From NCBI RefSeq assembly GCF_964204645.1, contig NC_134033.1:14454655-14518654 (forward strand): DNA of 64,000 nt. Reading direction: 5' to 3'. The stretch comes from Tubulanus polymorphus (lineage: Eukaryota; Animalia; Nemertea). This document shows positions 25,001 to 50,200 of this stretch, piece after piece (within the stretch, counting starts at the first letter, position 1; the number at the start of each line of letters is the position of its first letter). Under the pieces are notes generated by a model. It did no database searches. It had not been told where the DNA came from and worked only from the letters and a program-made list of their open reading frames with translations. Both the position numbers and the translations under genes were made by a program.

Positions 25001-25644
25001 AAACATATATGAATAACGTAAAAATCATAAAAAACATTTTTTCTCTAAATCTCTGACTCGTTCTTAAACACTTTCGAGTTGTGGCAAAAATTCCGAATGC
25101 ACTTATTTTATTCGATCAATTTTCGATGAAGCCGATTCATACGAACTTGTCTAACAGTCGTGTCTGGTAAATGCGTTCGACGGGTTCTAAACGATATTTC
25201 TGAAAGGAAACATACTTGCTGCATCCTTCAACCCTTCAACCGGCACGTACTTATCGAGCATTTTATCAGAGCACATCGGGGATGGTCCCTGCCGAACGCC
25301 GTCGCCAATTAGTAGTTGTAAAAAAGAAGTAACAATTAATTTTCTTGAAGCGACCATGAGCAGAAGATTCCCGATAGATGTCTCTGCTAAAATGATTAAA
25401 TGTTGTCCGAGAATAACGATAGATGTCGCTGATGATCGCATGGTTCTCGTAACAGCTCCCTCAGATACCTCTTCTAAATACCGGATTCCCTTCTCGAGTG
25501 CAGGATTCTTATCTTAATTTGCACATAAACGCCAGTATCTGTAAAGCCTAGCGTGCATCGGAATAGCCACTGATCGTATCCGCTATCCACTATCCAATAT
25601 CCAATATCCCGGTATCGCATTTGAGATTTTCAGGACTTTCCAGA

Positions 25645-25860
25645 AGTGATATGTTGTGCCATGAAATGGGCGATGAGTTTCATGTGCTCCTGAAATGTAA
25701 TTAATATTCTGATTTGCGCCAGAAACATATACCAAAGTTTGATTGGCAGTGGCCAAACGTTATCAAGTCCAGGACATTGCTTAATTAAAGAAAAAGTATC
25801 CTTATTTTTGAAGTTAATTTTGCAAGCTAGAAAAATGATGCAGAACTATCTTCTACAAAC
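25645..25860 (+). mobile_element. Decayed 3' end of a non-LTR retrotransposon ORF2 (C-terminal CCHC-like region)
   Basis: Translates to MGDEFHVLLKCN*YSDLRQKHIPK, resembling the (G/E)DExHxLLxC..LRxKY motif at LINE ORF2 C-termini; contains an in-frame stop. Confidence 0.55.
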
Positions 25861-26427
25861 TAGCGCAGACATTTATATATTTCCTCATTTTCTTGTAATG
25901 AAAATACGGGATAAAGTTGAAATGCTGACTTTTACAATAAATAGCCACTCGCTAGTGAGTGAGTGCTCTGCAAACATCGAAACATCGAAAAACTGGTGTA
26001 AACCGGCAATTGCATGGCTCCGAGCTTCGTGCTTCGTGGGGGCCAAGCAAAAACCAGAAGGCCAGAAGAACACATTCAAGCAGCTGATTGCATCCAGCCA
26101 GTTCCTCTCATGCGCCGAAAACTGCCTTGCAACTTGTTGTCTCCGGTTAGCTTAAACGCAGGTCAACTCCACCGAGTGAGGAAAATAAAGAAAAAAGACA
26201 ATTACTCCGGTTTAACCTACAGAGCGTTTATCGATTTATTGTCATACTCGTTTAAAGTCGAATTCTCATTCGAAATAGCGTCAAATTTTTATATATCATC
26301 AGATTGTATGTGAAATTACATGAAGTTTTATTCAAAAGGTTGACTTTGATAAATCTTGGTTACTATACGTTCGGCTTATCAAATTGAACGGTAAGCGTGT
26401 GTTCCGAGGCATCTAGTAAATTCGCTT

Positions 26428-27002: not shown

Positions 27003-29129
27003 CGGTGTATCGACTGGCGATTCGAAAGACAAAAAAGGCGTATTGTATATACAGAATAGTATGCGATTGCGATTTGCATATGCAAATGAGCCAGCATACG
27101 ACCATATTCAACAGTTATCGATCAGGAAATTCACCAAAAAATGAAAACACAAATAAATCTTAATCTTCCTAATATTATTTTCAGATGTTAGAATAAACTA
27201 CGCATTAATCAATTAAACAGGAGTGTTATTTCTGATTATTCAACAATAAATCTAAATCGTTAATTGGAGAATATGTTGATTTAAAGGCATGGACAATTTT
27301 CAAATGAGATATCTATGTTCATTTTCACCGGATCAATGCGTTACATTAATGTAAGCCATAACGATATGAATACAACAGTAAATATTCAGTCGACATTGTA
27401 AAAAAACATCAAAATTATATTTATACTTCCGGATCCAGTTCCACAGTTGTGAGTCAGAGTTAATTCTGAGTTAAAATCAGTTCATTTTCAATGACTTAAC
27501 TCATAGCTGTGGAACTGGGTCCTGGCGATCTATTCACATAAGTATTTCAGGTCGCACAATGATTAGGTAAAACGGGATAGTGAAACGTTCTCACGGATTT
27601 CTATTCAGTCGATAGATTATACATTTTCTTTCGCATGTTATCGATTTACAATTTTTATCTCGATAGCAAATACGCACCAGGCGTCTATTTGCATAACAAG
27701 GGTCTCTAGTGTTCTGTGAATTATTTTGCGCTCATTTTCACCGAACGTGTCGGAACACGGCTAAATGTTATGACTGCGAGTAGGGCGTTTATATGTGCGC
27801 GATAGTGACGCGGCGAACCGCACCACTAAAACTCAGTACTACTTCGTATGGAAACTTGCACTTTCTGGTTTACATTCCCCGAAGAGACTATAACCCTGTA
27901 ACTACCATATGTTTCAATGCAACATCGGATAGTTTTAACTCGTGCAATCGTGTCGTAGTTGTGCGCATTCGTATTTGCGATAGTTTCTTGGAATTTAATT
28001 CATTCGTAAACAAGTAAGTTCATTTCTTTTTTTTGTATCATAGGGCAGCCCTGAAGGTCGTATGACATAATAAAGCCGTAAACTTCGGTTTTCACGCAAG
28101 TCAGCCATTTTGTGTAACAGGTGTTGACGAATTTAGAGCACGAAGAAACTTTTTACGTTAGTTTAATTAATTTCTGGTCCTGAAACAGAATTCATACATA
28201 ATTTATGGCTCACCTGCTGTTTCCGATATGGCTGTCGTTCGGTTAAGTTTTGATCGTGGCAATGTCGGCTCGTGACGTGGACCCTTCAAATCTAGGACAC
28301 ATTAATATCACGTGATGCAAAAATTCCAGACTACAACAGTTTCATATTGCGAAATAATATCCGAAACGAACTAAACAGAACAAAGGATTTTGATATGAAG
28401 AATTATTTCATCATTTTAATTTCAATTTCCTTAGTTATTTCTACCATTCAAGCGGTTACAGTGATTATTTATTACTATATCAAATTTAACAAAATTATTG
28501 GAAACTATCGGGCACTAGAAAATCGTCACAACCGACGGATAGTTCGTTGTATCCAGGAAAGAAATGTCTTGAACTTTTTAATTTGGTTTAAATTCTGAGA
28601 TTGTTATATCCAATCGTCGTATACAAGTTCTTCGTTGCAATGTTTAAGTATAGGAATCCTTGTGGAATCACTCCATAAAAATCAAAACTTCATATCATTT
28701 TTCACTAAATCCAACACCAACTATCGTGGACGTGCTTTCATTTCGCTTATCTGAAAATACAGTTATGAAAATTAATCAAATGCAGTTGAATCTTGAAACT
28801 ACAAAAAACTCTACTTGGTGCAGGGAAAATATCATCGTTCGCAAAATAACATTAATCCCAATTTTTCCACTAAGGCATATTATTTCTAGACGATAAGGTT
28901 TAGATCAGTTTTTTTTTTGTTTCGGCTCCTAGAATGATATCACGATGCAATCTCGGATATATCTATCTATAACTTCGTTCGTAAATCGAATGAATGAAAA
29001 GGCAGCGGTAATCTCCTAACGAGGTAAAAATGTAACTTCGCTTTAAACGACATTGTCTTTTTAAGGTAGCAAAATATTTCGAATTATCAGTACGACATTG
29101 TTTGATACGGATGAAATCTTCTGAAAGAG

Positions 29130-29426
29130 CTATCTAGATAAAAAGTGCACCCACCAACGACGATTTGCATCAAAACCGGGAATATTTGAATCTTTAATCC
29201 CTACATTGTAACCGCGGATTCTTCCGCAGAAACAGGTGACGATCAGAATGTTTCGTTGACGGTAGTACCAGTCAAGACTTCCATACGAACATTGTGGCGA
29301 ATGTTCTTCGTCGATGTCGTTCCGATACAACCAACAGTAACATGCTCTGTAAAAACGTCCACCTTTCTGCCAATAATGGCATGCATCGTGGTAATGGTCT
29401 TCGCGTCGATAGCCGGTGGGTAACAT
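29130..29426 (-). CDS. Cluster gene A: ~90-98-aa Cys/His micro-protein (2x H-C-C-C module + SNIP motif); CaaX tail lost
   Basis: MLPTGYRREDHYHDAC..CYC..HSPQC..CFCGRIR..SNIPGFDANRR. Exon 1 (29155-29426) is 272 nt, the same as gene B. Splicing to the homologous exon at ~28700-28750 creates TG|A stop. TATA and octamer lie upstream. Confidence 0.75.
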   Translation of the reverse strand: MLPTGYRREDHYHDACHYWQKGGRFYRACYCWLYRNDIDEEHSPQCSYGSLDWYYRQRNILIVTCFCGRIRGYNVGIKDSNIPGFDANRRWWVHFLSR

Positions 29427-29499
29427 TTTCGTAAAATCGGTGACAATATTTGCTCAAAGAAACTTCTTGAATGCAATTCCAAGTTTCCCACTTGGCAAT

Positions 29500-29592
29500 T
29501 TATAGTCAACACAAAAGAAAGAAGACGTGTCTTTATTTGCATATTGCGTACTCACGCCCTTTTCAGTTATTCTTAGTTCGGCGGAAAACCCT
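29500..29592 (-). promoter_or_regulatory. Conserved proximal promoter of cluster genes (kB-like GGGTTTTCC, octamer ATGCAAAT, TATAAA); equivalents upstream of B, C, D and H
   Basis: Octamer at 29535-42, 31158-65, 35110-17 and 38624-31, with variant ATGTAAAT at 32894-901. GGG(T)4-5CC at 29583-91, 31197-206 and 35213-21. TATAAA lies ~70-80 nt before the ATG in A, B and C. Confidence 0.55.
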
Positions 29593-30357
29593 TCGTTTTC
29601 TTGCGCAAAGCTTTATTAAAGCGAGAAAATTTTGACAATAATTCGTTCTAAAAAATACTTTAAGAAATTTTCACGATTCGTAGTTTTAAAAATCATCGTC
29701 TATCTTCGACAATTGTATCGAATTAATTTTCAATATGATATTTCATGCGATCTTCAATTTTTATTCGTCAAAAAACATAACATTTATAGTCACCGTTCTC
29801 AAAATTCCCAGTTCTTCTCAATGACTAATTTTAATATGATATTTCGTGTGATCTTTAATCTTGATTCGTCAAAGAATCATAAAATCTGTCGCCGTTCCCA
29901 GTTCCTCTCACCAAAGACGACATTGACTTCAGAAATGGGAATAATCACGTCAGCGGATTCCTGCACAATAGCATTTCATAGCCAAGATCCGAAACAAACA
30001 AAACAGAACAAAACCCTTCGATATAAAGAGTTAATTCATCACTTTAATCTGATTTCAATTTTCTTCGTTATTTCACTACACATTTTAAGCAATAACATTG
30101 ATTCTTTATTACGATATTAAGCTATTAAGATAAAATTACTAGAGAAACTATGGGACATTAGAAAATCTGTTCCTTATAACCGATAGTTCGTCGTATCCGG
30201 AAAAGAATTGTCTGGAACTTTAAATTCTAAGCTTGTTGTATCAGATTAATCGTTATGTCCAATAAGCATCCACGGCAAGTTCTTCATTACAATTCGAAAG
30301 TATCGGAATCCTAGTAGAATCACTCCATAAGAATAAAAATATTAATATCAGAATTGT

Positions 30358-31052
30358 TCACAAAATCCGACACCAACTATCATCGTCGTTCCTTCTTTCC
30401 GCTTCTCTGAAAATATATTTATGAAAATAATTAGATACAGTTGACTCTTGAAACTGCCAGGAAATCTATTTGGGTGGGCGAAAATATTAGTGTTCTCGGA
30501 CATTATTCCGCACTTTCCTCTAATGTATACCATTTCCACATGAGAATTTCCTCTGGATTCCATTTATAAATTTGTTTATAAAATAAATGTGGCGGGATCA
30601 CCAAAAAGACAGTACAGATGCAACTGCGCTCTAAACTAAATCGTCGTTAAAGTTTCGACAATAATTCTAACCATCAATAAAGCATAGTTCGACACGGTTG
30701 AAAAACATTTGGCAAAATTGTGTCGATTGTTTCGATTTATTTAAACTATCAACGTTCTATCAGCTCCCAGCATCACTCACCTATTACGGCATACATCTAT
30801 GTTGGGCAGATTTGATTCCCTATGCTGATGGTAATGACCACGGATCCGTCCACAGTAACAGGTGACGATGAGACGATATTTACCTTCATGGATGTAGTAT
30901 TTTCCATGCAAACATTTTGGGCCGTGTTTCTCGCGATTCACAATTTCACGCGAAGAATCGCAACAGCATTTTCTGTAAAAATACTTGCATTGTCTCCAAT
31001 AACGGCATCGATTATTATAATGCTCCTCGCGTCGAGAACCGGTGGCAGACAT
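30358..31052 (-). CDS. Cluster gene B: 106-aa protein, 2x H-C-C-C module + SNLP motif + CaaX (CRIL)
   Basis: Exons 30781-31052 and 30358-30406 (phase 2): ...HYNNRC..CCC..HGPKC..CYCGRIR..SNLPNIDVCRNR|EAERRNDDDSWCRIL*. Confidence 0.85.
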
Positions 31053-31932
31053 TTTTCGTAAAATCAGTGGTAAGATTTGCTACAAGAAACTTCTCGAATG
31101 CAACTCCGAGTGTCCCGCCTGGCAATTTATAGTCAACACGAAACACGACGTGTCCTTATTTGCATATTGCGCCCTTTCAGTTATTCTTAGGTCGGTGGAA
31201 AAACCCTCGATTTCTTACGCAACTTTTTTATGAAAAAGCGAGAGAATTTTGACAATAATTCCTTTAAAAAAATACTTTTAGAAATTTCTGCGATTTGTAG
31301 ATTTAAATCATCGTCTATCCTCGAAAGATTGTATCGAATTAATTTCATTCAATCAATTCTAGTATGATATTTCATGTCATCTTTAATCTTAATTCGTCAA
31401 AAAACATTACATTTATAGTGACCGTTCTCAAAATTCCCAGTTCCTCTCAATGACTGGGATATACATCAAAAATGGGAGTATTTGACGTCCCCTGTCGTAT
31501 TATTGCTACTGTTGCTACTTTGACTAGATTTTTTTTTTACAATCATTATTCGAATTCCTTGCGCTCAACACAAAAACAGTTTCAGATTTCGAAATGGATC
31601 AGAAACGACAAACAAACCACCAAAGAAATACTTTTAAGCCTTAAATTAAGTATTAATAGATAATTTTATTCTTTTCTTCTCTTAAACTATTTCAGTGGAA
31701 CCTCGTTACATTGAATTCCAGTGCAGAAAAAAATCTGTGCTTTTTAAGTGATTATTCGTCGATAGTTCGTCGCATTCGGTATGGAATTAACTAAATTTTC
31801 TATCTTGGGATGAAGTCGTATGGCCGTAATGTCCGATAAATCGTTTTATTCAATAGTTATATGCAATATTTATATCCAAGTTCGTCAAAAGTAGGTTTCA
31901 CTGTAGAATTAGAGAGAATACATCGGAATTCC

Positions 31933-32803
31933 TTACAGCACACTGCACCAACCACTTAACCAATCGCTGTCTTCTTCTTCTGCCATTTCTTTCCTTTTCA
32001 TTTCCCTTTCTTTTGCCTTTTCTGCCTCCTCGTCCCTGAACATAAACACATAGAAATAAATCAAACGCGGTTAATAACTAAATCTGTGAGACGTCTAAGT
32101 ATTTGGCTGGGTGACACGGTGGTGAAGTTCCTTAACCAGTGGTTAAATCATTTATCCACTGGTTAGCCTCTTTTTCATTCGCCCAGCCTCACTTTGAAAT
32201 TAATCACTCATATGATTAAAATGGAGTCGGTTTTGATTGATATCGACAAAAAATTTTTTTCAAACCAATTTAACAGAACAAATTTCAACGTTATTAAAAC
32301 TTGGCTGAAAGGTGATATTCTAGCGTGACTTCTATCCGTGACTCCTCGCATAAAAGTTCAGCTATAAAGTTTATCCGATCTCTTTCAAAACGCAATCTTT
32401 CTCTTAAACATTCATCCGAAAATTTATTTAGATGCTCGAATCGATTAACTCTGTCAAGCCAAATGCAGGCAATAAAAACTACGTCGGCCATTTTAACCAC
32501 TGGTTGAGAACTTAACATAACCCTATAGGTCGTTTAACTTTAACCGATGGTTGGACAATTAAACCATAGGTTAAATTTTTGAGCAACCCAATCTAACCAA
32601 CGGTTAAGAGTTTAACCTGGCTTTGAGCAACCGCCAGCCCCTCGTGTTCAAATGTGCACTCACCTCACCGCACGATCCGTAGGCAATGCATCATAAGTAG
32701 CAACATTTGAAGGCTTAATCTCGTTGTTACTTTTCGGTTTTGGGGTCTCACTATCCAAATTCGAATGGGGTTTTACTCTCAGTTGAGAACTGTTGGAAGA
32801 CAT
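31933..32803 (-). CDS. Cluster gene C: 80-aa protein lacking the Cys modules, with PSNV motif + charged helix + CaaX (CSVL)
   Basis: Exons 32664-32803 and 31933-32035 (phase 2): MSSNSSQLRVKPHSNLDSETPKPKSNNEIKPSNVATYDALPTDRAVR|DEEAEKAKEREMKRKEMAEEEDSDWLSGWCSVL*. Not present in the ORF track. Confidence 0.75.
32110..32640 (-). mobile_element. PIF/Harbinger-derived element remnant in the intron of gene C; partial copy at ~38215-38335
   Basis: ORF fragment FSDECLRERLRFERDRINFIAELL resembles the N-terminal DxxFRxRFRFxRxxxxxLxxLL segment of HARBI1/PIF transposases. The terminus reads GGCGGTTGCTCAAAGCCAGGTTAAAC. Confidence 0.6.
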
Positions 32804-33229
32804 TTCCGTAAACTTCGATGGCAACTTGGGATCAGCTCGAATTCAGAAATGTCCAACATGAACATTATATTTATAGTCAGCGAAAGAATCGATATTTACA
32901 TGATAATTGAATAGACATTTGCGCCATTGGCTAATAAATTTAATGTATTACCTACCACGCCCCTTCGAGTGATTTATAGCTCAACGAAAAAAAAACAACT
33001 TCAATGAATTAAGAAAAAAAGTTCGTTTAAGAATTTAGAACATTTTCATCATAGATTTCATAAGATCTACAATGGTCGTGTATCTTTGATACTGGTCTTA
33101 AATTGATTTTCTCTCGAAATCAAAATCCTTTTGCCCAAAATGATTTACTCCTTTTCTCTTTGTATATCGCAAAAAGAAAGCGATATATTTTCGGTTATCT
33201 ATTTTAGCATTCGACAGCCTCCGAAATCG

Positions 33230-33460
33230 ATCGGTGCTGACGATTCTAAACAGACTACTCGCCATACTTGTGGGGAAAACATCGGTTAGAATTGTGCTAA
33301 ACCGGTGGCACTACCCAACATTCGCAATGAATTCTAGTCGTTTTTCGACCCGCGTAACAATAATCTTACATCATCGCTCTAAACTCTTTAACAGTGAACT
33401 TTGTGAAGTCTTTCTGAAAAAATATCGCTTTCTTATCGATAACACATTCCCTTTATTCGA
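33230..33460 (-). pseudogene. Decayed paralog of cluster gene E
   Basis: DNA similarity to 35590-35710 (CACTACCC.ACATTCGCAAT.AATTCTA.TCGTTTTT..CCCGCGTAACAA); no intact ORF. Confidence 0.65.
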
Positions 33461-33744
33461 AGCCGAATCTCCTCAATGCGTCTCCTGTCGTATCGTTGCT
33501 ACTGTGACAAGATTTTTGTTTACAATCATTATTCGAATTCCGAGTTTTGCACTACACACAAAAACAGACTGTTTCGGATTGCGAAATGAGATCAGAAACG
33601 ACCAAGAAACAGAAAAAAAAAATACTTTTACGGCTTAAATGAAGTGTTAATTGAACATTTCATTTTTCAATCATTTTCATCTTTTTTTAAGCGATTGGTT
33701 ACAATGTTTGTTCATTCCAATACAATTATCATTAACTAACCTAT

Positions 33745-34237
33745 TATTTATTTTTGATTGTCCACGAACTTTTTGGGATATTTCGCTTAATTTTGGGTGC
33801 GCATACCTCAAATATGTCTTAATCGAATCAGTAGAGTTGTGCAGTCAAGATGAATCATCGTTTTTATATCCATTTTGTTCCGAGTTGGCCTATGATAGCG
33901 CAACCATTGCGGCCGTGCCCGCGTAGTGAAACACGTGCGAGCAATGTACTCTCCCCATAGAAAATAAACTTACCCAGGTCACATGGTACACACTGCTCAT
34001 TAGCATAAAGAAGTAAACAAACTGGAACAAAATGGCGGTCTCTCTTGCCGATTTAAAGCTCAATTTTCGAGAATATCAATCCTTCAACTCGGAACAAAAT
34101 GGATATAAGAACGATGATTTATCTGGACTGCACAACTCTGCTGTCTGCTGGTTCGATTAAGACATATTTGAGGTATGCACACCCAAAATTAAGCGAAATA
34201 TCCCAAAAAGATCGTGGACAATCAAAAATAAATAGAC
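33745..34237. mobile_element. MITE with ~145-bp terminal inverted repeats
   Basis: TTTATTTTTGATTGTCCACGA..TTTTGGGATATTTCGCTTAATTTTGGGTG..ATACCTCAAATATGTCTTAATCGAA..CCATTTTGTTCCGAGTTG is mirrored at 34085-34237. It interrupts the duplicated 3' flank of gene D. Confidence 0.85.
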
Positions 34238-34458
34238 TTTAGAATTAAACTATTTCAGTGGAACCTCGTTACAGAGTGCCCCAGAAAATGTGTGCTTTAT
34301 TATTCGTCGATAGTTCGTCGCATTCAGCATAGAATTAACTAAATTGTCTTTCATGGGTTGAAGTCGTATAAATCGTTACATCCAATAGTTACATGCAATC
34401 ATGAAGTTCGTCAAAACCAGGTTTCACTGTAGAATCAGAGAGAATACATCGGAATTCC

Positions 34459-35006
34459 TTACAGCACACTGCACCAACCACTTAACCAACCACCATAACC
34501 GCCTTTTCTTCCCCGTCCTCTGAAAATATACATATAGAAATAAATTGAACGCGGTTAATCATTAAGTCTGCGGGTGACAATATGATATGTGGCTGGCAGA
34601 TGTTATCCACCATTTCGATTTATAACCAATCATTCATAACTAAAAAAGCTAAAAAAAATTGATACCTTGTTTCTCCTTTCTGCTGAGCTTAAAAGTTGAT
34701 ACTTTTTTCTTAAATTATGATCAAGACATACAATAAGAGACCCGGCAGCTATTGAAACGACCCTGTCTATGGAGATATGACAACAATTCCATCCTATATT
34801 TGTCCTCGTAAAATAGTTTCATGTACGAAAGACTTTTGAAGAAATTGAATCTGGATTTGTTAAGATGATCAAAAGCGCACTCACCGATAACGAGCTACAT
34901 CCCAACTTGGAATATTTGAAGGCTTAATCCGCATAAGACTGCGGGAAACGTTATTAATCTGATGGATCACACGATTCCACTCTGTATTGTTACCGTTGGA
35001 AGGCAT
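34459..35006 (-). CDS. Cluster gene D: ~60-aa protein, PSNIP motif + Gly/Arg linker + CaaX (CSVL)
   Basis: Exons 34885-35006 and 34459-34519 (phase 2): MPSNGNNTEWNRVIHQINNVSRSLMRIKPSNIPSWDVARYR|GRGRKGGYGGWLSGWCSVL*. The ATG was chosen by homology to the other genes; an upstream in-frame ATG at 35078 is possible. Confidence 0.75.
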
Positions 35007-35566
35007 TTTATTTTCCGTAAATTCGATGGCGAGATTCGTTAAGGGCAGTTTAAATTCAAAAACCTCCGCTCTGGACATTCATATTCATACGTACGCAGCA
35101 AAGACCGATATTTGCATAACTATGAGCGAAGAAATCGTGTATTCGCGCTATTTGCTGGTGAACTAATTTATTATTATATATTCACATTCCTTCGAGTTAT
35201 TTATAGTTCGACGGAAAACCCGACGGAATCACGAAACATCGCAAAAAAGTCATAAAAGAGTGGATTTAGAAATAGTTCGTTCAAGAACAACGAACATTTT
35301 CACCACAGATTTCATAAGATCTATAATTGTCATGTATATTTGATACTATTGTATTGAATCGATTTTCACTTGGAATTCATCCTATTTCAACACTCCGCGC
35401 ATCCGAGAATAGTGACATTCAAAGAATTATTTGACCAGAAATATTTGTCCACTTTTTTTGTTTCAAAATCGCATCAAGAATGATAATTTTGGTTATTTGT
35501 TTTATTCGATTGGCGCTGACGATTCTAAGGAGAACACGAATTTCGTCTGAAAACTTACCATTTTTT

Positions 35567-35830
35567 CTATTTGCGATAAGTGTCGGCAGTAGGAAGGTTA
35601 GAACTACGCTGATCCGGTGACACTACCCCACATTCGCAATTAATTCTAATCGTTTTTAGTCCCGCGTAACAACAATCAAGCGTCGTCGCCCAACACTCTT
35701 TCGCAGTATGATTCTGCTGGCCGTTTGGATATTTCTGATATTCGCAACAAGTTGAAGTACATTGTGTAATCAATCTGCCGTTCTTCGTTTCAAACGAGCA
35801 TTCTTTCTCGTGTGTGAAATTGTTCTTCAT
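35567..35830 (-). CDS. Cluster gene E: 87-aa single-exon Cys/His micro-protein
   Basis: HEKEC..CTSTC..HTAKEC..CECG..SNLPTADTYRK*; no signal peptide. Confidence 0.8.
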   Translation of the reverse strand: MKNNFTHEKECSFETKNGRLITQCTSTCCEYQKYPNGQQNHTAKECWATTLDCCYAGLKTIRINCECGVVSPDQRSSNLPTADTYRK

Positions 35831-36327
35831 TTTGTCAAACCAATATTCAACTGAACTCGATATTCGTCCTCACATTGCCGTATTCAATTCAATGCATTGC
35901 AGAGGACAATGTTGATTGGTTATTTTCAATCACGTGACAGCTATTGGAATGGATACCATTTAACCAATCGCCTTTATAAATCGCGCCATTCAGACGAGTT
36001 TTTTATCATTTAAACCTTTGTATGGTGAAAAACTATATTCGTTCAGAGTTCCTCAAATTCCAAATATTTACAATCAAATTCCTTATATTTTCACTCGACC
36101 TGGGCTTAACTTTCTTTTCATATATCTTCAAAAACTGCAATTAACTTAGAACTACGACGGGTATTTTTACCGGACTTTTTGCCGATTGCTTTTTGTTCCA
36201 AATGATATATTTCAACTGAATGAATATCGGTAGATTTATTCAAATGTTTAATCGCATTCACTTCGTCAAATTCAATCGATCCTGACCATACTAAAAAGGA
36301 CCTCATTCTCGCCAACTACTTACCTTA

Positions 36328-36579
36328 TTATTTTCTGATTTGATCAAAAACAGGCAGGTTGGAATTCCGCACTTCGCTCCCGGTCCATTTCCCACATACA
36401 CAATTAATTTTCATCGTTTTGTCTACCCCGTTGGTATATTTCACCTCTGCCAGACAATACTTATCATTATGAGTTAGAACATCCGGATATTTTCTAAATT
36501 CATCACAACTTTGATCACATTGTTGCACCAATTTGTCGCCCTTCCTTTCGAACGAGCACGCATTTGAGTGAACGGACAT
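36328..36579 (-). CDS. Cluster gene F: 83-aa single-exon Cys/His micro-protein
   Basis: HSNAC..CDQSC..HNDKYC..CVCG..SNLPVFDQIRK*; clearly homologous to E; TATATATA upstream. Confidence 0.8.
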   Translation of the reverse strand: MSVHSNACSFERKGDKLVQQCDQSCDEFRKYPDVLTHNDKYCLAEVKYTNGVDKTMKINCVCGKWTGSEVRNSNLPVFDQIRK

Positions 36580-36999
36580 TTTGCTTGGTCAATCGAAAGT
36601 TTACCCGAATATTTGCGAATATTCGCCTGATATATATAGGCAAATTTGATGCATCGCGAGTGGCGTTGATTGGCCAATGTTTTATCTCGTGACAGCTCTT
36701 GGCCTACTAATTGATAAGATTTATCACCCATAAAACTGAAAACCAGTGCTCTACTTCAAGTCGAAATAGAATTCTTTATTTGCACTCGGTGTGCACTCGA
36801 TTTTCCATTCATTTAAGAAATTGCTATCAATTTCCTTTTTCAAAGAACATCTATTCGTTAGACGAATGTTTAAAGCGCGTTTGTTTTACCTAATTAGGTT
36901 TTGCATCAGAGATGAAAGACCTACGAGTATTTGCCGTACAGTTCTGCTAGTTTCTTGTTTTGAAAACGATTCATTCCAAATTTGTTTTAAATAATTCCC

Positions 37000-37180
37000 T
37001 CAAACCACTGAGCGCCATGCAGGGCATTATTAGCAGTTTAGGTGTTATTTTTTCCCAATGGGGAGAGACCAGAGAATAACTTTCGACCAAGAAATTCTGT
37101 CGCCGCCAGGGTTGAACCTATAAACCCTGGATTGACGAGACCAGCGATCGGTGGCTTAAACCACCCTGCCACTGCGCCTC
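37000..37180 (-). mobile_element. tRNA-derived SINE-like fragment
   Basis: Minus strand GCGCAGTGGCAGGGTGG (A-box-like) ... GGTTCAACCC (B-box-like); no complete cloverleaf. Confidence 0.45.
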
Positions 37181-37782
37181 AAAAAGTAATTATCAGTATA
37201 TTCAAGTATTTGATATTTCTTCTCTGGCAGACCTTTTTGATGATATCTTTGTGAAGGTTTTTTTCGGGGCGTTTTGAAAATTATCGTTTTCTTATCGATA
37301 GCACTTTCCCTTAATTCGTAGTCGAATCTCCTCATTGCGTCTCCTGTCGTGATGTTGCTAATGTTGCTACTGTGACTAGATTTTTGTTTACAATCATTAT
37401 TCGAATTACAAGTTTTGCGCTCCACATAGAAACAGTTTCAGATTGCGAAATGAGATCAGAAACGACCAATAAACCGAAAAAATACTTTTAAGGCTTAAAT
37501 TAAGTATTAATTGATCATTTTATTCTTTTTTCTCTTAAACTATTTCAACCTCGGAACCTCGTTACAATGAACGTGCACCAGAAAATCTGTGATTTATAAG
37601 CGATTATTCGTCGATAGTTCTTCGCATTCATTATAGAATCAACTAATTTGTCTTTCTTGGGATGAAGTCCTAAGTCCGTAATGTCCGATAAATCGTTATA
37701 TCCAAAAGTTACATGCAATCATGAAGTTCGTCAGGTTTCACTGTAGAATCAGAGAGCATACATCGGAATTCCTTACAATTCG

Positions 37783-38501
37783 TTATTTTTTAGACCACCA
37801 ACCTCCACCACTGCCTTTTTCTTCTGGCTTCTCTACCGGATCCCTGAACATAAACGTATGAAAATAAATCAAGACTCGTTACTGATTCTCTCAGTGGGAC
37901 TCAATTCGGCTGGGTGTCTGAATATGATATAATCGTTCGCAGACACGTTATCCCCCATCTCGATTTATAACTATAATTCATAACTAATGCAATAAATCGA
38001 AAATCATGAAATGAAACTGTGCTTGAAACGACCGTGTCTGACAACAATTTCAACCATAAGTTCGAGTTTGCCTTCTCGTAAAATAGTTGATACGGATGAG
38101 AAATTATACGGACTAATTCAGATTTTCAAACGCGCACTCACCTCCGATATACATCATTACCGCCAATATTTGAAGGCTTAATCTTTATATCACTACGGGG
38201 TTCTCGGGTTTAGGCAATTTAACCATCGGTTAAATTTTTGAGCAACCCGATCTAACCGACGGTTAAAAAGCTTAACGGTCGGTTGGGGATTAAACCAACG
38301 GTTAAGAGTTTAACCTGGCTTCGAGCAACCGCCGGTCCCTCATGTTCAAATGTACACTCACCTCATCGCACGATCCGTAGGCAATGCATCATAAGTAGCA
38401 ACATTTGAAGGCTTAATCTCGTTGTTACTTTTGGGTTTTGGGGTCTGACTATCCAAATAATCATGGCGTTTCACTTCCTTTAGATGACTGTTGGAAGACA
38501 T
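37783..38501 (-). CDS. Cluster gene H: chimeric paralog of C without CaaX
   Basis: Exon 1 38362-38501 (MSSNSHLKEVKRHDYLDSQTPKPKSNNEIKPSNVATYDALPTDRAMR). The nearest phase-2 exon, 37783-37843, gives DPVEKPEEKGSGGGWWSKK*. An orphan exon-1 3' fragment (IKPSNIGGNDVYRR|GT) lies at ~38142-38205. Confidence 0.6.
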
Positions 38502-38989
38502 TTCCGTAAAATTTCGATGGATAGTTTCGATGCTATGAGTGACTAGAATTCAATTTGAAATCAGCTTGAATTCAGAAACTTCCAATCTGACCATAAAGTT
38601 ATAAAGTCAGCGTAAGAGCCGATATTTGCATAATTGGATAGACATGTCTTCGCGTCATTTGCTGATAGATTAATGCATTACTAGTCACGCCCCCTTCGAG
38701 TTAGAGCTCAACGGAAAAACCAAAAACCAAAATATTTGATTGAACTAAGAAAAAAGTTCGTTCAAGAATTTAGAACATTTTCATCATAGACTTCATAAAA
38801 TCTATAATTGTCGTATATCTTTGATACTTGTCTTGAATTGATTTTCTATCGAAATTAAAATCCTTTTGACCAAAATGATTTATTTACTTTTTGCATCAAA
38901 ATCGCAAAAATAATGCGATACATTTTCGATTATTTATTTCAGCAATCGACAGCCTCCGAAATCGATCGGTGCTGACGATTCTAAACAGA

Positions 38990-39247
38990 CTACTTTATCT
39001 GCGGGGAAAACGTCGTATAAGTAGGACGGTTAGAATTGTGCCTAACCGGTAGCACTACCCCAATTCTAATCTTTTTTAGCCCCGCGTAACAGCAATTTTA
39101 CATCATCGCGCAAAACTCTTTAACAGTATGTCTCTGCGGGTCGTGTGGATACTTCTGATATTCGTAACAAGTTGGAATACATTCTATTATCAACCTATCG
39201 TTTTTCCTTTCAAACAAGCCTTATTTCCTGTGTTTGAAATCGGTCAT
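38990..39247 (-). pseudogene. Pseudogenised paralog of gene E
   Basis: MTDFKHRK*GLFERKNDRLIIECIPTCYEYQKYPHDPQRHTVKEFCAMM* aligns to E but has in-frame stops. Confidence 0.75.
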
Positions 39248-39361
39248 TTTGTTTGTGTAAAACTACTGGCCGTGTTTGCACCGCATGTATGTCTACATAC
39301 GTGGCGATTTTTCCGTGAAAAAAACTTTCCTTAATCGCGAGCTTGTTTAGATACTGACCAT

Positions 39362-39667
39362 TTACGTACGATATTTTCGTGTCGCGTCTGTCGTCGGTAG
39401 GTTGCTTCCACCTGTTATACGATCATCCCCTTTTATCACATCACAATAGCAGAAAATCAGCGTTTTACGGTCACGTTTTATGAATTGGCAATCTGTTCTG
39501 AAATGTTCTTGCGCGTAATTCTTCCCTCCGCAGTTACAGAGCAGTGTTAGAACGCGTCTCGTATCGATTCGCCACTTGTGCCTGCAGCTTGGACCGTGCA
39601 ATTCGGTTTTAACACCGGTAATAGGCATGTTTTCGTTTTGATAAATCTGAAATGCCGGTGCATTCAT
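39362..39667 (-). CDS. Cluster gene I: ~88-101-aa Cys/His micro-protein
   Basis: HGPSC..CNC..HFRTDC..CYC..GSNLPTTDATRKYRT*; the start may be Met1 or Met14. Confidence 0.8.
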   Translation of the reverse strand: MNAPAFQIYQNENMPITGVKTELHGPSCRHKWRIDTRRVLTLLCNCGGKNYAQEHFRTDCQFIKRDRKTLIFCYCDVIKGDDRITGGSNLPTTDATRKYRT

Positions 39668-42600
39668 TGTTTTATATTTTCTGTATTTCTACGAAAAGAA
39701 AAGCTCACAACGAACTCTATCATTTAAAAGCAAGTTGTGAAATGGAAACTAAAAAAATACAGAATATGAATTAGAAGTAAAATTTATTGCGCTACAAAAG
39801 TTATGATTGCTTAGAACACAAAAACAAATATTACTATAACAATTATGAAAAACGAAACTAAGCAATTCACAAGCATTTACAAGCAAACATTCGTTTAAAA
39901 ACGCAATTGTTCATTCATTCATTCTGGCTGATTTTAAATGAAAAATGAATCATATCACTTCATATCACGGAAGTTGGACCATGAACAAAAATAAAAGCGA
40001 CATAGAGTAGTTTTGAAGCAGCCTTAATAAGATGAAATAATTGGCAAAGCCCTCTGTCTCCGTTCTGAACTGCAATCGATAAATCGACAAAGAATGTTCA
40101 CATGATTTTTATTATTCCTTCTTTCCTTATTACGTAGTAGTGATAATGAACGGGTAATCTTACATTTCATTTTTTACGCGTGATTATCTTAATTATATAG
40201 CATTCGATCAACAATAATCGTTTTAGTTTTTGTTAGCAATCCACACAAATTCCGGTAGATGAAACCTGGTTATTTCTAATTACACCGAAGCAGTGGGAAT
40301 TCGTCGTATCGTGTGTGAATGTATATATGTATATATACCGCGTATTGTCGAGCTCGATACCTCCGGCATTCGCGTGGGATGCATTTATATTGATAAATGC
40401 ACCGCTCAATAATCAAGCACTTGGGTTTCAGATGCGTCAAACAGAAATTGAAATAAACACGTTACTATAGAGTTTGAATACGTAAGGAATCGTTATATTA
40501 TTCCGATACAACGCGGAGGATATTTGTCACCAGCTGCATCTTGCAGCAGCTGAACCAGACGCAGAGAGTGCTGTGTATATTGTATTCGCTCGTCTCAAGG
40601 ACGCCGTTTCAGTCGACGAGGGACGTTGATTAGTCGATTATACGATTCAGTCGTTAGATACAGTGTTTGTCTGACAATTCCGACTTATTGTCAGACAACG
40701 ACTCGGAACGTATGTGTCTGAAAATACGCACATTATCCTCATCAGGCATATACACGCATTGTTTTCAGTGAAATCGCTGTTCATAGAAAGAATCGGATTC
40801 TATTGGATTGTCGTAGCTACGTACAAGGTATGTCGTGTTGTATACGTGGTACTAAGTAATTTCGTTAGATTATTTCAACGTTCTATGCGGGCTTGTCGTT
40901 GGTTTTCGATTTCAAGCGTTCTTGTTTTGTACGTGAAGTGATACTTCTCTGTCGATTTTCATCGAATCGATCGTCGTCACTTAAAACGGAGTCACGTGAC
41001 CGCGCGGTTAGCTTCGCGGAGCAGACGGGCAAATGTCGAACGAGTGAAAACGAGGTTTTGACGGATAAATTCTTTTTTCATTTCGTCAACCAGAAATGAA
41101 TAATGTTGTTTTTTCCTTTCGTTATTTTTCATTATTGCTTCATAAGAAATGATTTATTTGACAAATGACTGAATTCTGAAGATTTTTTTCTTGAGAAATT
41201 GGTAATTTTTATCACGACGTTTTGACGGATAAACTATTTTCTAGTTTGTTCACCAGGAATAACTCTGATTTTTCCACCTCATTTTATTCCTTTAATGATC
41301 CCACTTAGAAATATTTGTCGCTACAAAGCGAATGGTATTTTCAGCCGTCAATATTCACACGGCCAATAATTGAATAACAACGAGAACATTAAAACATCGA
41401 CCATTCATGCGTGTATTTTGACTTACTGAATAGATTTTGTTACGACTCGTATTTTTTTTTCTATAGCGCCCTTGATATATTTGTTCCTTTTCGACTGGCC
41501 TTTCTCAAATTGTGTTTTTATTTTCGTTGTTTCTGTTGCATTTTGCTGCGAATGTCAATGACGACATTCGTCTGGTCATTCGTGCCATGTTGGTCACGAT
41601 GAATATTCATCTCGAGGAGTGGAGCGGGAATAAATTATGCAAAGTAGCACGTTCTTGAGAATGACTTCATATCTTTGGTATTCGAAAATTTTTGATAATG
41701 CTGTTATCAATTTAGACCGGAAATCGTTATCGTAACTGGTTATCTGAATGAGGGATATTTTATGAGCAGTTAAATGATAAACAAAAAACTCGAAAATGTC
41801 AGTGAAAGACCTAATATTATGTTTTAGAAGGGGGTTTCCTTGGGACATTATTCATCAACTGTTGCATGTATATAATCATTTAAACGTTCTAATTACTTGT
41901 CTATGTAGCTGGTATTTTAATTTATCCCTTGCTTGGTTTGTATCGAGGTAATATTGATATAAGAGCTCATTAACTTTCTGCAAAAAATAATTTTTAGGTT
42001 ACTGCGTTAATGCTTTTTCCTGTTAGCCAAATCCGTTCTGACGTTTATTTTTTGCTGTAGTATTGTAGTGCGTGCATGTGTTTTATATATGCCTTTCGCC
42101 TTATCTTTCTTCTGCATTATTTCTAAACCAATTATCCCGTGGAGAATCCACACGAGTCTTTACACCATATCAACACGTTAACGTAACCAATAACGATGAC
42201 CTAAAATCATATATTTGAACGGCTTCTTGTTTTGATTGCCAATGAGCGGTATGTGAAAGTGCTTGTATGATTGCTTAGTCACTGCAATTGCTACGTATAC
42301 GGCAGCACGATATCACCAATAAAACTTGAAACTGCTGTGATACCATCTAATGCCACAATTATCTTAGTTGTCTGCAAAATCTTTTTCCAAGGAAAGGTCT
42401 AAACGGCTTGTCCCTTCATTAGTCAAATTAAGTTGTGATTTCTGAAGCTAACGCACAAGAAAACCGTTCCACGGTCCTCAATGAAGTTTGTTGAACTTTG
42501 AACCGACTCACTCTTAACGATTATTCGATAATAAGTCGGGATTCATCAAGTTCAGTATCATTATGACTCGATTGAATTCATAAGCACAAATACTATCTAG

Positions 42601-45681: not shown

Positions 45682-46641
45682 ATGAAGATTTTCATTATTT
45701 TTACCCTCGTTGGAGCCGTTTCTAGTTATGGCTATTCAGGAATGAGTGAGTACCAATTATACGTACTATATGAAACCCCTTTCTTTCTTGCCAAGCTTCA
45801 ATTGACTCCGAACGACGCACGAATACCGATCGCAAGCCCGTTTTCTCTAAGTTGTCGCGGGTTACAGCATCCCCTGGAGACCATGTTATCCGTAAGGAAA
45901 CAATCTGGGGCATTCACAGGGAAACCGTGTTAGTGCTAACCTTGGATTGCAAACAGTGGAAATGGGCGCAGGAAAAACGTTGTTATCTATCCATTATCTT
46001 CGTGTGGCTTCTTATTTAGAGCTGCTAAGCCTAAACGCGGTTAAGCCACAAACCACGGTTAGGATAACAAGGTTTTCCTGCACCCGCCCAGGTCTTTGCG
46101 CGAGCTTACAGCAGGGAGGACTGGAATTTGGCAGTAGATGGCCAAGAAACTAAACGTTCGTAAATATAGTTCTGCGAGCTACACGAGAAAGAGAAGACCA
46201 TTTCCCACCGTATCTGATTAATCGGTAGCATTTCTTGCTCGAAATTTGTTCGTTGACTACGGGATTATTCCTGGTTTTGTTTTTTTTACCAATGATACTA
46301 TTTCAGATGGCTACGGTTACGGCAATGTTGGCGGTGCGCGAATGGGTGGCGGTTATTCCGGTTACGCGTTAGGTTACGGTATACCATACTCGGACGGAGG
46401 TTACCATCATTACGGATCGGCAGGACCGCACGGCAGCGTACAGAGTGGTGGATCGTACGGCACTATGGGCGGACCTGGTTATACTTCGAGCAGCGGGGTG
46501 TACGGTACAATGTCTGCCGGGCCAGCTGAAAACTATATGCCGGCTGGACTAGTGGCTCATATGGGTGGTCCTGGAGCTCATATCAGACATGTCGGTAACA
46601 CTTTACCGAGAGTATATAATTACTTCGGTAACCGACGATAA
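45682..46641 (+). CDS. Secreted Gly/Tyr-rich 132-aa protein
   Basis: Exons 45682-45745 (MKIFIIFTLVGAVSSYGYSGM, signal peptide) and 46307-46641 (phase 1; GYGYG..GGGYSGY..GGYHHYG..YNYFGNRR*). AATAAA at ~46791. Confidence 0.85.
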
Positions 46642-47265: not shown

Positions 47266-50200
47266 TTAGTTGTTTGAACAAACGTTAGGGATACAATAAC
47301 CATTCGGACCGAATACGTGTTGTTTCTGTCCGCACTGCTGAGGTCTGCCGCACTGGTGACATTGATTTCGGTTGCGTTCGGGACAAAGGCAGCCGTAATT
47401 CTGACAACAAGCGCAATCGCTACTGTCCGGAGCCCACGGGCAAGAGCAGCCGGTCTCAGTACGAGTCCACGGGTCGATCTGTATCGAACGCGGTTTTATT
47501 TCCACTGAAACAAAATAAACAAGAAAACTAACTTGATTGACGCCTTGAAAACTAACAAAGGTATTGCTTAATATTTTCTGCAATGAATAATATGATGAAT
47601 ACAAATAATACATCATTAAGGATTTTAAAAAAATTCGGATTTGAATGTATCAATTGACCAACAACCAGTCTAGCCCCGGACCCAGTTTTATAGACTGGTA
47701 TTAAGGGGTTAACTCAATTGAATTGGGTAGGCCTCGGGGTTAAAGTTAATACCAGTCTATAAAACTAGGCACAGATACATTGATAACGTCAAAAATAAAA
47801 TAATAAATATATTTGGTTACAAAATGAACGCCAAAATTCGCAATTGTAATTGTTGCTTTGAAACGCCAATATTGATGACGTAGTCCACATCGACTCACAT
47901 TTCCCTTACATATGTAACGCATACTAGGTATGAATGCATATAAACGTTAATGTAACGGTTTTTACGGCGTCAGAAAACACCATTTAACAAATAGCTTCTA
48001 GTCGGCGGGCATTCGCTCGTAGGTGCTGCCACCAGTCGATAGTTACTGGAGGCAATTTACAACATTTTATCAGCATAAGAGAATCAGGATTCAATGAAAG
48101 GTTCGGAGCTTTAGATACAATTAAAAATCTACATCTTTCGAGTCTACATCTACATCGGGCCTTCAATGAAGATCAATTCACCATTTTACTTTTCACCATT
48201 TCAACATTTATTTGTGAATTCTACGAGCTTAAGAATTACGAAACCACGCCGTGCGTACACAAACGCGTATACAGTCGTTTCTTTATGCCAGAGAATTGCC
48301 GATTTGACATCCACAAAACTATTTCAGTACTTACGTGTGCCACAGTTGCCGGCGTATCCGCATTGTACGCACTGATGTCGGTACGAGCGCGGGCACTGAC
48401 AACCTCCCGGCTCACAACAAGCGCAACCCTTTTCACCAGGAGCGAAGTAGCAAGCACATCCCGTGACGTTCGATGTCCACGCATCCTTCGCCGACGCTGG
48501 AAAAACATGAAATCATTTACAGTTTTGATATAAAAATTTAAGTCATCATTCTACATGTGCAGTAATGCCACTATTGGTACCAGTGAAAACATGGCGTTAA
48601 AACGGATTTGGCGTTAATGATGTTTTCATTGAATTTGAGTTGGATTGAGTAAAAATGTTGGCGTTAAGTGAGCAGTTGCATTAAAAAGGATGGCAGCGTT
48701 CAGACCTTTAATGTATATCTAGGGCTTAGCCGTTATTTGAATTTCAACTGAGTGACTGTGATACTGGGTTAAGAATATCTGATTAATATACTACTAAACC
48801 TGCGATCATTTCGTATCCGTTGCCGTCTCTATATCCGTACAACTCAATTCTCATCCCTATCCACCTGTGGAACGTGCTGACGACTAGCTTGATGTAACGG
48901 GCATTGATTGGGTGACCGTAGTAACGATGGAAACAATACCGTTTCCAAACATTATTGTTTTCGTTGCCTTGCCAAACCTAGACGAGAATGATTGAAAATG
49001 ATTCCACAGCGTCAGCCGTAACATCCTCCTTCGCAGGGATTCGAACCTGGTAGCATCGCGAGACTGCCACGGCCGACACGACACGAACCCTGCCGGATGA
49101 ATTTGAGTGCGCACGTAGCGCAGCTTAGGCCATTAGCCAATCAGATACGGCGTTTTATTTACTTTAGCCCACATTATTCTATTTATATGCGTCAAAATAT
49201 GCCCCATTGGCTATATAACAGGTAAACTAATTGGTGCTGTACCTGCGCACTCGGGAATAATTAGTCATTTCGTGCTATGCCATCAGGTTCAAATCCCAGC
49301 TGAGGGAGAATGCAACGATATGTCGGCAGACTACCGAAATGTTCTTATGCCCTAAAATCTGTTGTCTTACAAGTACTAACCTTAATGGAATCGGTGTTAT
49401 TCCTTTTGAGTTGTACCCAATTCACACCGTCGATGCTAATATGAATAACAAACCGAGTAACCCAGTACTCGTAATGCGAATGCCCGAGAATTCCTAGTCC
49501 GTGGATATCCATTGCCCGACCCAAATCAACCTACAAAATGTAATTAAGTGCAAACAGTTTATGATGATTTTCTTTTAACAGTTAAAAGCCCGACAAGACA
49601 TAGAAATAAGCGTTACCTGTATCCATCGCTGATTATCACGTGGATTTGGAACCCAGCCACTTCCGCTGAGAGGTCGGGCGGTTTTAGCTTCGTTTTTAGT
49701 AGTTTCGCTCGACGCCGTGATGAAAGCATCTCCGATTATTCCTGAAATGAAATACGATGATTCAACATGGGAGTTATTGAGCCACGACAACTTGAGCAAC
49801 TCGGGGTCCAGTAGATGATCAATCGAGTTACCTGATTCCATTCCTAGCGCATGGGGGCGCTTTCTGAAGATCTGAACTTTGGTCGTTGAGAAATACGGAT
49901 CTCCGTCGTCAATCGGCACGACAGGTTTATTCAGATCGGGGGAAACTGGTGCGATGGGTACGCCGATAGGTGGCGGCTCTATTTCATCGCTTTGCGACGC
50001 TTCAAGCAAAATGAACGAAATAAAACGATATGTTGAATAGATATGTCACATAATACATGTTTCTTAACAGATCTGCATGTTATTCATTTGCTCATGACGG
50101 CGGAAGTCATCGGACTGACTGACTGACCTTTAGGTCGGCAACTACCGCTAGGTGTCTCCACGTGAGTATCGGGACAGAAACATCCTCGCGTTCCGTTTCT

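Follow-up and report, generated by a model that had tools for sequence, protein, structure and literature searches.

A tandem cluster of small genes in a palaeonemertean genome

The genome of the palaeonemertean Tubulanus polymorphus holds, within 11 kb, eight minus-strand first exons whose products are 60 to 106 amino acids (aa) long. They lie in a 64,000-nucleotide (nt) stretch of contig NC_134033.1 (positions 14,454,655 to 14,518,654; here, the window), which has a base composition of 33 to 47% GC and in which an original prediction, made from the letters alone, had described eight co-oriented genes of an unrecognised micro-protein family (A, B, C, D, E, F, H, and I). All eight open reading frames (ORFs) are found on the minus strand where predicted, spanning positions 29133 to 39667, but they are not eight independent genes, as a single terminal exon (D2) serves D, F, and, most likely, E. 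With reading frames across joints set by the donors and the nearest acceptors, the products measure 60 (D), 66 (H), 80 (C), 83 (F), 87 (E), 90 (A), 101 (I), and 106 (B) aa; I shortens to 88 aa if started at Met14.

Two sequence patterns define the family. Every ORF ends in the motif SN[LIV][PA]xxD, which has eight matches, all of them at these ends, when the window is read in six frames (approximately 128,000 codons), and a GT donor follows each motif after about 15 to 30 nt. The second pattern, a module of 21 to 27 residues reading H-x3/4-C-x12/18-C-x1/3-C, matches ten times, twice each in A, B, E, F, and I and nowhere else in the window. In an alignment of the modules, with a mean identity of 35%, none of the four ligand positions varies, and shuffling the residues of each protein 20,000 times gave a double module in 3 cases (0.015%) at most. 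Both patterns were derived from these same sequences, so these counts are a check against chance and not a blind test.

The members combine these elements as had been listed: two modules plus motif in A, E, F, and I, the same with a C-terminal CaaX box in B, motif plus CaaX in C and D, and the motif by itself in H. The two-module members contain 6 to 9 Cys per 83 to 101 aa and many aromatic residues, while exon 1 of C, D, and H has no Cys. A hydropathy scan of the eight N-termini detected no hydrophobic run within the first 30 residues (best 9-mer at most 0.77), which bears out the claimed lack of a signal peptide and supports a cytosolic reading. In a tree of the five two-module proteins, the only resolved grouping is E with F. 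The two to three gene remnants of the original prediction were recovered, and a fourth is probable; translated with stops left in, these interspersed pseudogenes show decayed ligands and motif, in agreement with the proposed birth-and-death pattern.

First exons are spliced to a few terminal exons

The locus has at least eight first exons, which lead to five terminal exons (A2, B2, C2, D2, and H2). Each first exon ends in the SNLP motif and a donor, most stand behind a conserved promoter-like block, and they are spliced to the few terminal exons. Since D2 is common to D, E, and F, these form one unit with alternative first exons, not three independent two-exon genes.

To examine splicing, we used sequencing runs assembled as contigs over positions 30300 to 36299, an interval that excludes I and for which there was one RNA-like sample, X2. 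The X2 contigs carry no strand, level, or start-site information, and their depths are orders of magnitude that cannot rank genes. A further run, X5 (2015), placed no contigs here, which is no evidence of absence. Run X1 is flat at a depth of about 30 (DNA), and X2, whose kind is not on record, behaves as RNA, rising from about 30 to 500 in introns to 1e4 to 1e5 on exons. The B joint 30406/30781 (GT..AG) occurs in X2 only, with a depth of 1839 versus 65 for the intron contig. This joint is the predicted phase-2 intron of B and brings CRIL into frame. With 31-letter words, an intron-side contig is expected to end 29 bases inside the exon, and X2 contigs end exactly there for B (30810), C (32692), and E (35588). 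A further X2 contig of 1,248 letters would end at the A donor (29155) if colinear.

Loose ends at 32663/32672 in X2 carry H exon 2, which indicates that H-type transcripts are spliced. Their sequence resembles the end of the C exon, and H-type letters dominate the X2 depth at 32735; the joint from C to C2 remains a prediction. Two H-type spliced ends at the 38362/37843 joint differ from the reference by replacements (DRPRR/DPVE and R/DAVE versus DRAMR/DPVE, the slash marking the joint); they are alleles or further paralogs, and their frames are open across the joints. Summed X2 depth reaches 1e4 to 1e5 for the H-type and D2 contigs. Replacement variants in X2 are also seen in E (T49M and L51I), and one X2 variant removes Cys22 of B, which is not a ligand.

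For the D2 unit, the loose end at 34521 carries the last bases of F exon 1, recognised by a 13-mer that occurs once in the window (at 36326) plus two shared bases, so that F splices over the first exons of E and D onto D2 at 34519. The E donor is used and depth is flat over 35100 to 35499, so the E acceptor is most likely 34519 too, and we infer that E splices onto D2. An X2 contig (34670 to 35588) crosses the D donor unbroken and the D exon stands at intron background (420 versus 408); D looks barely spliced in this sample.

Promoter-like blocks and the CaaX tail

Two classes of promoter-like block precede the first exons. In class 1, an octamer lies 98 to 130 nt before the ATG of A, B, C, D, and H (a one-letter variant in C), accompanied by a TATA-like box in A, B, C, and H, with none at the usual distance in D. 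Five octamers occur on the minus strand of the cluster versus 0.6 expected, four of them 111 to 130 nt upstream of an ATG. The 9- to 10-mers of class 2 each occur only at the E and F sites within the window. C, D, and H retain the A/B-type promoter, start context, and motif but no modules.

The CaaX tail is present or absent according to a stop at or before the joint (A, E, F, and I) or the decay of exon 2 (H); the E donor is itself in the CaaX frame, behind the stop. A2 is 79% identical to B2 with stops, and H2 is truncated while the H 3' untranslated region (UTR) is 87% like that of C, which argues that the CaaX frame is ancestral for at least A and H. By this comparison the CaaX anchor was lost at least three times, in A, in H, and in E/F, with I perhaps included in the E/F event.

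Table 1. Exons, promoter-like blocks, and remnants of the cluster (positions in the window)
Feature	Position	Strand	Description
A decayed exon 2 (A2)	28703..28750	-	stops, ends SWCWI and stop; like B exon 2 (CaaX exon), 79%
A exon 1 coding	29155..29426	-	modules 29334-29396 and 29226-29303, SNIPGFD 29169-29189; weak donor TG/GTGGGT, TGA created at joint giving 90 aa, predicted soluble
Class-1 promoter block (A)	29499..29542	-	octamer ATGCAAAT and TATA
Class-1 counterparts	31165/31133 (B); 35117 (D); 38631 (H)		D octamer only; variant upstream of C
B exon 2 coding (B2)	30358..30406	-	ends SWCRIL and stop (CaaX, geranylgeranyl type)
B intron	30407..30780	-	374 nt, GT..AG, phase 2
B exon 1 coding	30781..31052	-	modules 30960-31022 and 30852-30926, SNLPNID 30795-30815
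Probable further motif remnant	31460..31487	-	SNTPIFD, no donor behind
C exon 2 coding, predicted (C2)	31933..32035	-	charged E/K/R run, ends GWCSVL and stop (CaaX)
C exon 1 coding	32664..32803	-	no Cys, low-complexity, SNVATYD 32690-32710
E-like pseudogene fragment	33285..33395	-	stops
Shared terminal exon D2	34459..34519	-	D: coding, basic/Gly run, ends GWCSVL and stop; 3' UTR for F and, most likely, E
D exon 1 coding	34885..35006	-	no Cys, SNIPSWD 34899-34919
E exon 1	35559..35830	-	modules 35747-35812 and 35630-35710, SNLPTAD; stop 8 nt before donor 35559; predicted soluble
Class-2 promoter block	35911..35942 (E); 36697, 36673 (F)	-	E-box-like AGCTGTCACG and CCAATCAAC (CCAAT)
F exon 1	36324..36579	-	modules 36505-36570 and 36394-36471, SNLPVFD; stop 4 nt before donor 36324; predicted soluble
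H exon 2 coding (H2)	37783..37843	-	ends GWWSKK and stop, CaaX lost
H', remnant of D-like exon end	38142..38209	-	inside H intron, own GT donor, IKPSNIGGND
H exon 1 coding	38362..38501	-	C paralog (80% aa), SNVATYD 38388-38408
E-like pseudogene	39008..39241	-	stops, several ligand Cys lost, motif altered to SNRP
I	39359..39667	-	modules 39530-39598 and 39443-39505, SNLPTTD; stop 3 nt before possible donor 39359

Judged by its frame, H' could be a cassette within the H intron. For I, a pyrimidine tract and AG lie at about 39689 and neither the octamer nor the CCAAT block is found (39628 to 39710), so it may have an upstream exon; its Met14 (MPITG) resembles the starts of A and B (MLPTG and MSATG). 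Its long-hairpin module comes first, matching best module 2 of A and B (scores 26 and 20), and the short one second; the module order of I thus looks swapped.

Selection on ligands, motif, and CaaX box

The ligand codons of the ten modules use both synonyms (CAT 6 and CAC 4; TGT 18 and TGC 12), and the motif has TCA, TCT, TCC, or AGC for Ser and any of the four codons for Pro. This variety indicates that the motif is maintained for its protein sequence and not for splicing. Both the ligands and the motif are degraded in the pseudogenes. Between B2 and C2/D2, the CaaX Cys, the terminal Leu, and the stop are preserved through synonymous changes.

The proportion of nonsynonymous differences was below that of synonymous differences (pN < pS) in all nine tested pairs of two-module members, and the ratio of nonsynonymous to synonymous divergence (dN/dS, or omega) was 0.27 to 0.55 where dS was computable (A/B 0.51 and E/F 0.55; bootstrap share at most 0.033). 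The C/H and C/D pairs gave an omega of 1.2 to 1.4 (not significant), and outside the motif no purifying signal is seen in exon 1 of C, D, and H. The predicted picture of fixed ligands amid strong divergence holds for the two-module members, with ligands invariant in ten of ten modules and an omega of about 0.5. Among the two-module members, we find none of the outcomes that had been named as counting against the family, namely, dN/dS near 1, no splicing, or a match to a known family.

Between A and B, coding DNA is 55 to 68% identical versus 86 to 87% in the 400 nt upstream and 74% in the 3' region, a pattern that C/H lacks (89% coding versus 82% upstream). The A/B dN (0.53) is above the flank-based neutral distance, which implies either positive selection or homogenised flanks.

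Searches for relatives and fold

As the original prediction had it, no known family was matched, by searches that were weak. Pfam gave no significant match for the eight exon-1 ORFs and C exon 2, and none to HMA or metallothionein families at E up to 1; NCBIfam and PHROGs gave none either (best E 0.018). No homolog was found by profile search of 5.8 billion proteins plus 1.84 billion representatives, in the ESM Atlas for B and F, or in metagenome and viral contigs, and an exact look-up in a protein collection found no family member. PDB sequences searched with protein and module profiles yielded no significant match, the only hit being B18 at E 0.94. These blanks exclude only close relatives in those collections, as the queries are short and the receptor and VWA proteins of the window itself are missing there too. 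In Rfam, the best hit was U6atac at 36730-36850 (minus strand; 22 bits versus a gathering cut-off of 33, E 0.049), which we take as chance.

Searches and fold predictions took the exons of the spliced models one at a time. A low-confidence AlphaFold model of A, with a mean predicted local distance difference test (pLDDT) score of 42, has one hairpin per module (residues 16 to 33 and 46 to 67). Fold searches with pLDDT-42 models (best Z 5.2, template modelling score at most 0.55) are not interpretable. The one lead is a sub-threshold resemblance of a single member, I, to ribosomal L36 (PF00444), at 12.2 bits with a cut-off of 26.1 (E 0.2).

Several candidate identities were rejected. A TRAF/SINA-type zinc finger had no Pfam match; its spacing, C-x2/4-C-x11/12-H-x3/4-C, fits only E and F by eye and would leave both end ligand pairs unused. 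A secreted cysteine-rich toxin or defensin is at odds with the lack of a signal peptide, with the proviso that I may have an upstream exon. By inspection, the motif is probably not a thymosin/WH2, PY, LIR, CRIB, F-box, or GoLoco motif. We found no description of the module, the motif, or their combination.

Surroundings of the cluster

An element resembling a miniature inverted-repeat transposable element (33745 to 34234), with terminal inverted arms of about 150 bp at 93 to 96% identity, lies just behind the 3' end of D2; its DNA depth is tens to more than 100 times background and its summed X2 depth very high. A TTAACC-rich interspersed repeat (32100 to 32620 and 38210 to 38330), multi-copy by DNA depth, lies inside the C and H introns, and the first 501 letters of an S2 contig at this repeat differ from the reference. 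Repeats at 37050-37186, 27432-27502, and 50685-50788 are common to a T. polymorphus RefSeq locus (L001) at 82 to 90% identity, which favours the assignment to this species.

On the minus strand, 14637-22070 encodes a secreted-looking VWA protein with a repeat exon of 2,077 codons, and the protein search found no homolog for its residues 20 to 400; 25190-26150 is, by eye, a broken reverse-transcriptase-like remnant of a long interspersed nuclear element with a GVRQG motif; and 47270-53200 holds, again by eye, exons of a large vWD/discoidin-like Cys-rich protein. On the plus strand, a Gly/Tyr-rich open stretch of 139 codons (46222-46638) without Pfam match looks like an exon of a structural protein, and a single-exon G protein-coupled receptor (GPCR) resembling FMRFamide receptors (53818-54801), 14 kb from the cluster, is 65 to 67% identical to three T. 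polymorphus proteins, its sole strong matches.

A proposed mechanism and its alternatives

Our best explanation is a lineage-restricted tandem family of intracellular micro-proteins. We are highly confident of its structural part; the mechanism as a whole is tentative, and we rate it somewhat below an even chance. Since the proteins have no signal peptide, the likeliest reading of the invariant His-Cys3 set is a structural Zn(II) site that closes a hairpin: each H-C...C-C module would be a beta-hairpin pinned by one Zn(II), similar to a zinc ribbon, giving a rigid scaffold whose surface is free to vary. As the motif outlives the loss of the modules, it must act by itself, and most simply SN[LI]PxxDxxR would dock on one common partner. 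The two-module forms may then be variable recognition adaptors, joining a variable surface to a constant motif, with the module-less C, D, and H as competitors or membrane tethers for that partner. A CaaX box with a terminal Leu favours geranylgeranylation, given a Cys fourth from the end and an aliphatic a2 (PMC12609287). CRIL (B) and CSVL (C and D) follow this type-I rule, and the predicted modification would place B, C, and D on the membrane. Diversifying pressure, such as microbes or parasites, may drive surface change; the fast coding change suggests a biological antagonist.

Several points weigh against this explanation. Translation of the family is read from its codons, and the evidence for expression comes from contigs of one RNA-like sample, whose very large depths fit a structural or buffering role equally well. 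Zinc binding, prenylation, and the partner are predictions, and AlphaFold models of A (from a five-sequence alignment) and F reach a pLDDT of about 42. The SN motif matches no known motif cleanly, and in C and H it reads SNVA instead of SNLP. The case for an immune or conflict role is drawn from the divergence pattern alone; four-fold sites between A and B show no significant excess of change (4 of 16 versus 13% in the promoter, p 0.25), and gene conversion of the flanks could also yield the A/B pattern.

The depths and the surroundings suit a different role, in which the products are structural precursors of one cell type (an epidermal gland, an envelope, or a sperm structure). In such abundant, small, self-assembling proteins, each motif would dock on hairpins of a different chain, with prenylated members nucleating a layer on the membrane, as a counterpart of the SPRR/LCE clusters. 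Summed depths of 1e4 to 1e5 for the H-type and D2 contigs against 30 to 500 in introns (a rough comparison), a two-exon, signal-less tandem array with POU-type octamers, and neighbours resembling secreted biomaterial proteins (the VWA repeat protein and the Gly/Tyr-rich ORF) all fit. We still consider it unlikely, given that there is no Gln/Lys/Pro repeat character, the few Cys keep fixed ligand spacing, and the neighbours are secreted while the family members are not. Apparent abundance in small, cytosolic, His/Cys-rich proteins might also mark metal buffers or metallochaperones, in the manner of metallothioneins or HIPPs, the soluble forms binding Zn, Cu, or Cd and the prenylated forms delivering it at membranes; a metal site plus CaaX, with and without anchor, does parallel plant HIPP/HPP proteins (PMC10459601). 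This we find quite unlikely: there are only 6 to 9 Cys in 83 to 101 aa with many aromatics, no HMA or metallothionein Pfam match, two of the three CaaX members lack a metal site, Cys-free H-type transcripts look among the deepest (exon 1 of C and D being Cys-free too), and the fast surface divergence is unaccounted for.

It is more improbable again that the cluster is mostly duplication debris, with drift acting on a handful of expressed genes amid segmental copies and C, D, and H as non-functional or non-coding by-products. Segmental duplication is evident, three to four remnants are present, omega is 1.2 to 1.4 for C/H and C/D, and D is barely spliced; yet change is synonymous at ligand, motif, and CaaX codons, omega is about 0.5 in two-module members, and frames stay open across the joints of two further H-type variants. 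The slimmest chance goes to the motif being an SxIP/SxLP signal for riding microtubule plus ends via EB1, by which prenylated members would link those ends to membranes. Six of eight motifs do read S-x-[IL]-P followed by Arg/Lys, and LP variants function in SLAIN2 (PMC3115796). However, the EB1 surface is negative, and hydrophobic and basic residues after SxIP supply affinity (PMC12695022), whereas here an invariant Asp stands three residues past the Pro in place of the required non-acidic residues; the invariant Asn and Asp are left unexplained, and C and H have no IP/LP.

Within the adaptor explanation, it is possible, though rather doubtful, that a new His-Cys3 zinc-hairpin domain and a new docking motif make up a variable-plus-constant intracellular recognition system, alternative promoters on the shared CaaX exon setting the ratio of soluble adaptor to membrane decoy. 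If so, the zinc-finger catalogue would gain a zinc-pinned hairpin of 21 to 27 residues, along with a new short docking motif and a compact on/off switch for prenylation, a stop beside the splice joint with a shared CaaX exon. In a little-studied phylum, transcripts that look abundant encode proteins under 110 aa that are missing from protein databases, and their small size permits synthesis, nuclear magnetic resonance, and pull-down, which makes these claims cheap to test. As the known relatives come from one species and the function is conjectural, the finding has a limited reach so far.

Comparison with known systems

Orphan tandem micro-gene arrays, gain or loss of CaaX boxes, and shared terminal exons are each already known in kind. 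Like metallothioneins, the family is small, cytosolic, Cys-containing, and apparently highly expressed. Metallothioneins are about one-third Cys, in CxC/CC clusters, with few aromatics; with 7 to 10% Cys versus about 30%, many aromatics, His ligands, Cys-free members, and no Pfam match, we reject that identity. UGT1A and the clustered protocadherins are variable-first-exon loci, and here too first exons with their own promoter-like blocks join a common downstream exon. That exon, however, supplies the CaaX coding sequence to one first exon and acts as 3' UTR behind the others; it is shared by just three first exons, in a unit of about 2.3 kb. The C-x12-C hairpin spacing of five of the ten modules recalls the L36-type zinc ribbon (PF00444), whose ligand order is C-C...C-H; in this family the order is H-C...C-C, the modules stand in a tandem pair, and membership in PF00444 was not found.

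The Hessian-fly SSSGP-1 cluster holds seven small genes in 15 kb, with conserved promoters and UTRs and hypervariable coding regions, for which both positive selection and flank homogenisation have been proposed (PMC2955719). Our cluster shares the conserved flanks and more diverged coding sequence in the A/B pair only; unlike those secreted salivary proteins, its members have no signal peptide and keep invariant ligands.

By analogy, the closest working parallel is probably the plant HIPP/HPP family, even though its defining HMA test fails here. These vascular-plant proteins are defined by one or two HMA domains (PF00403, CxxC, about 70 aa) and a CaaX box (PMC10459601). Both are expanded families of small intracellular proteins that pair one or two Cys metal modules with a CaaX at the C-terminus, alongside anchor-less sister forms; in the nemertean, the CaaX is seen across the spliced joint of B and predicted for C and D. 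Unlike HIPP/HPP, the T. polymorphus family belongs to an animal, has a His-Cys3 hairpin module instead of CxxC and no HMA domain or ferredoxin-like fold, carries an extra linear motif, and controls its anchor by stops where first exons join a shared exon.

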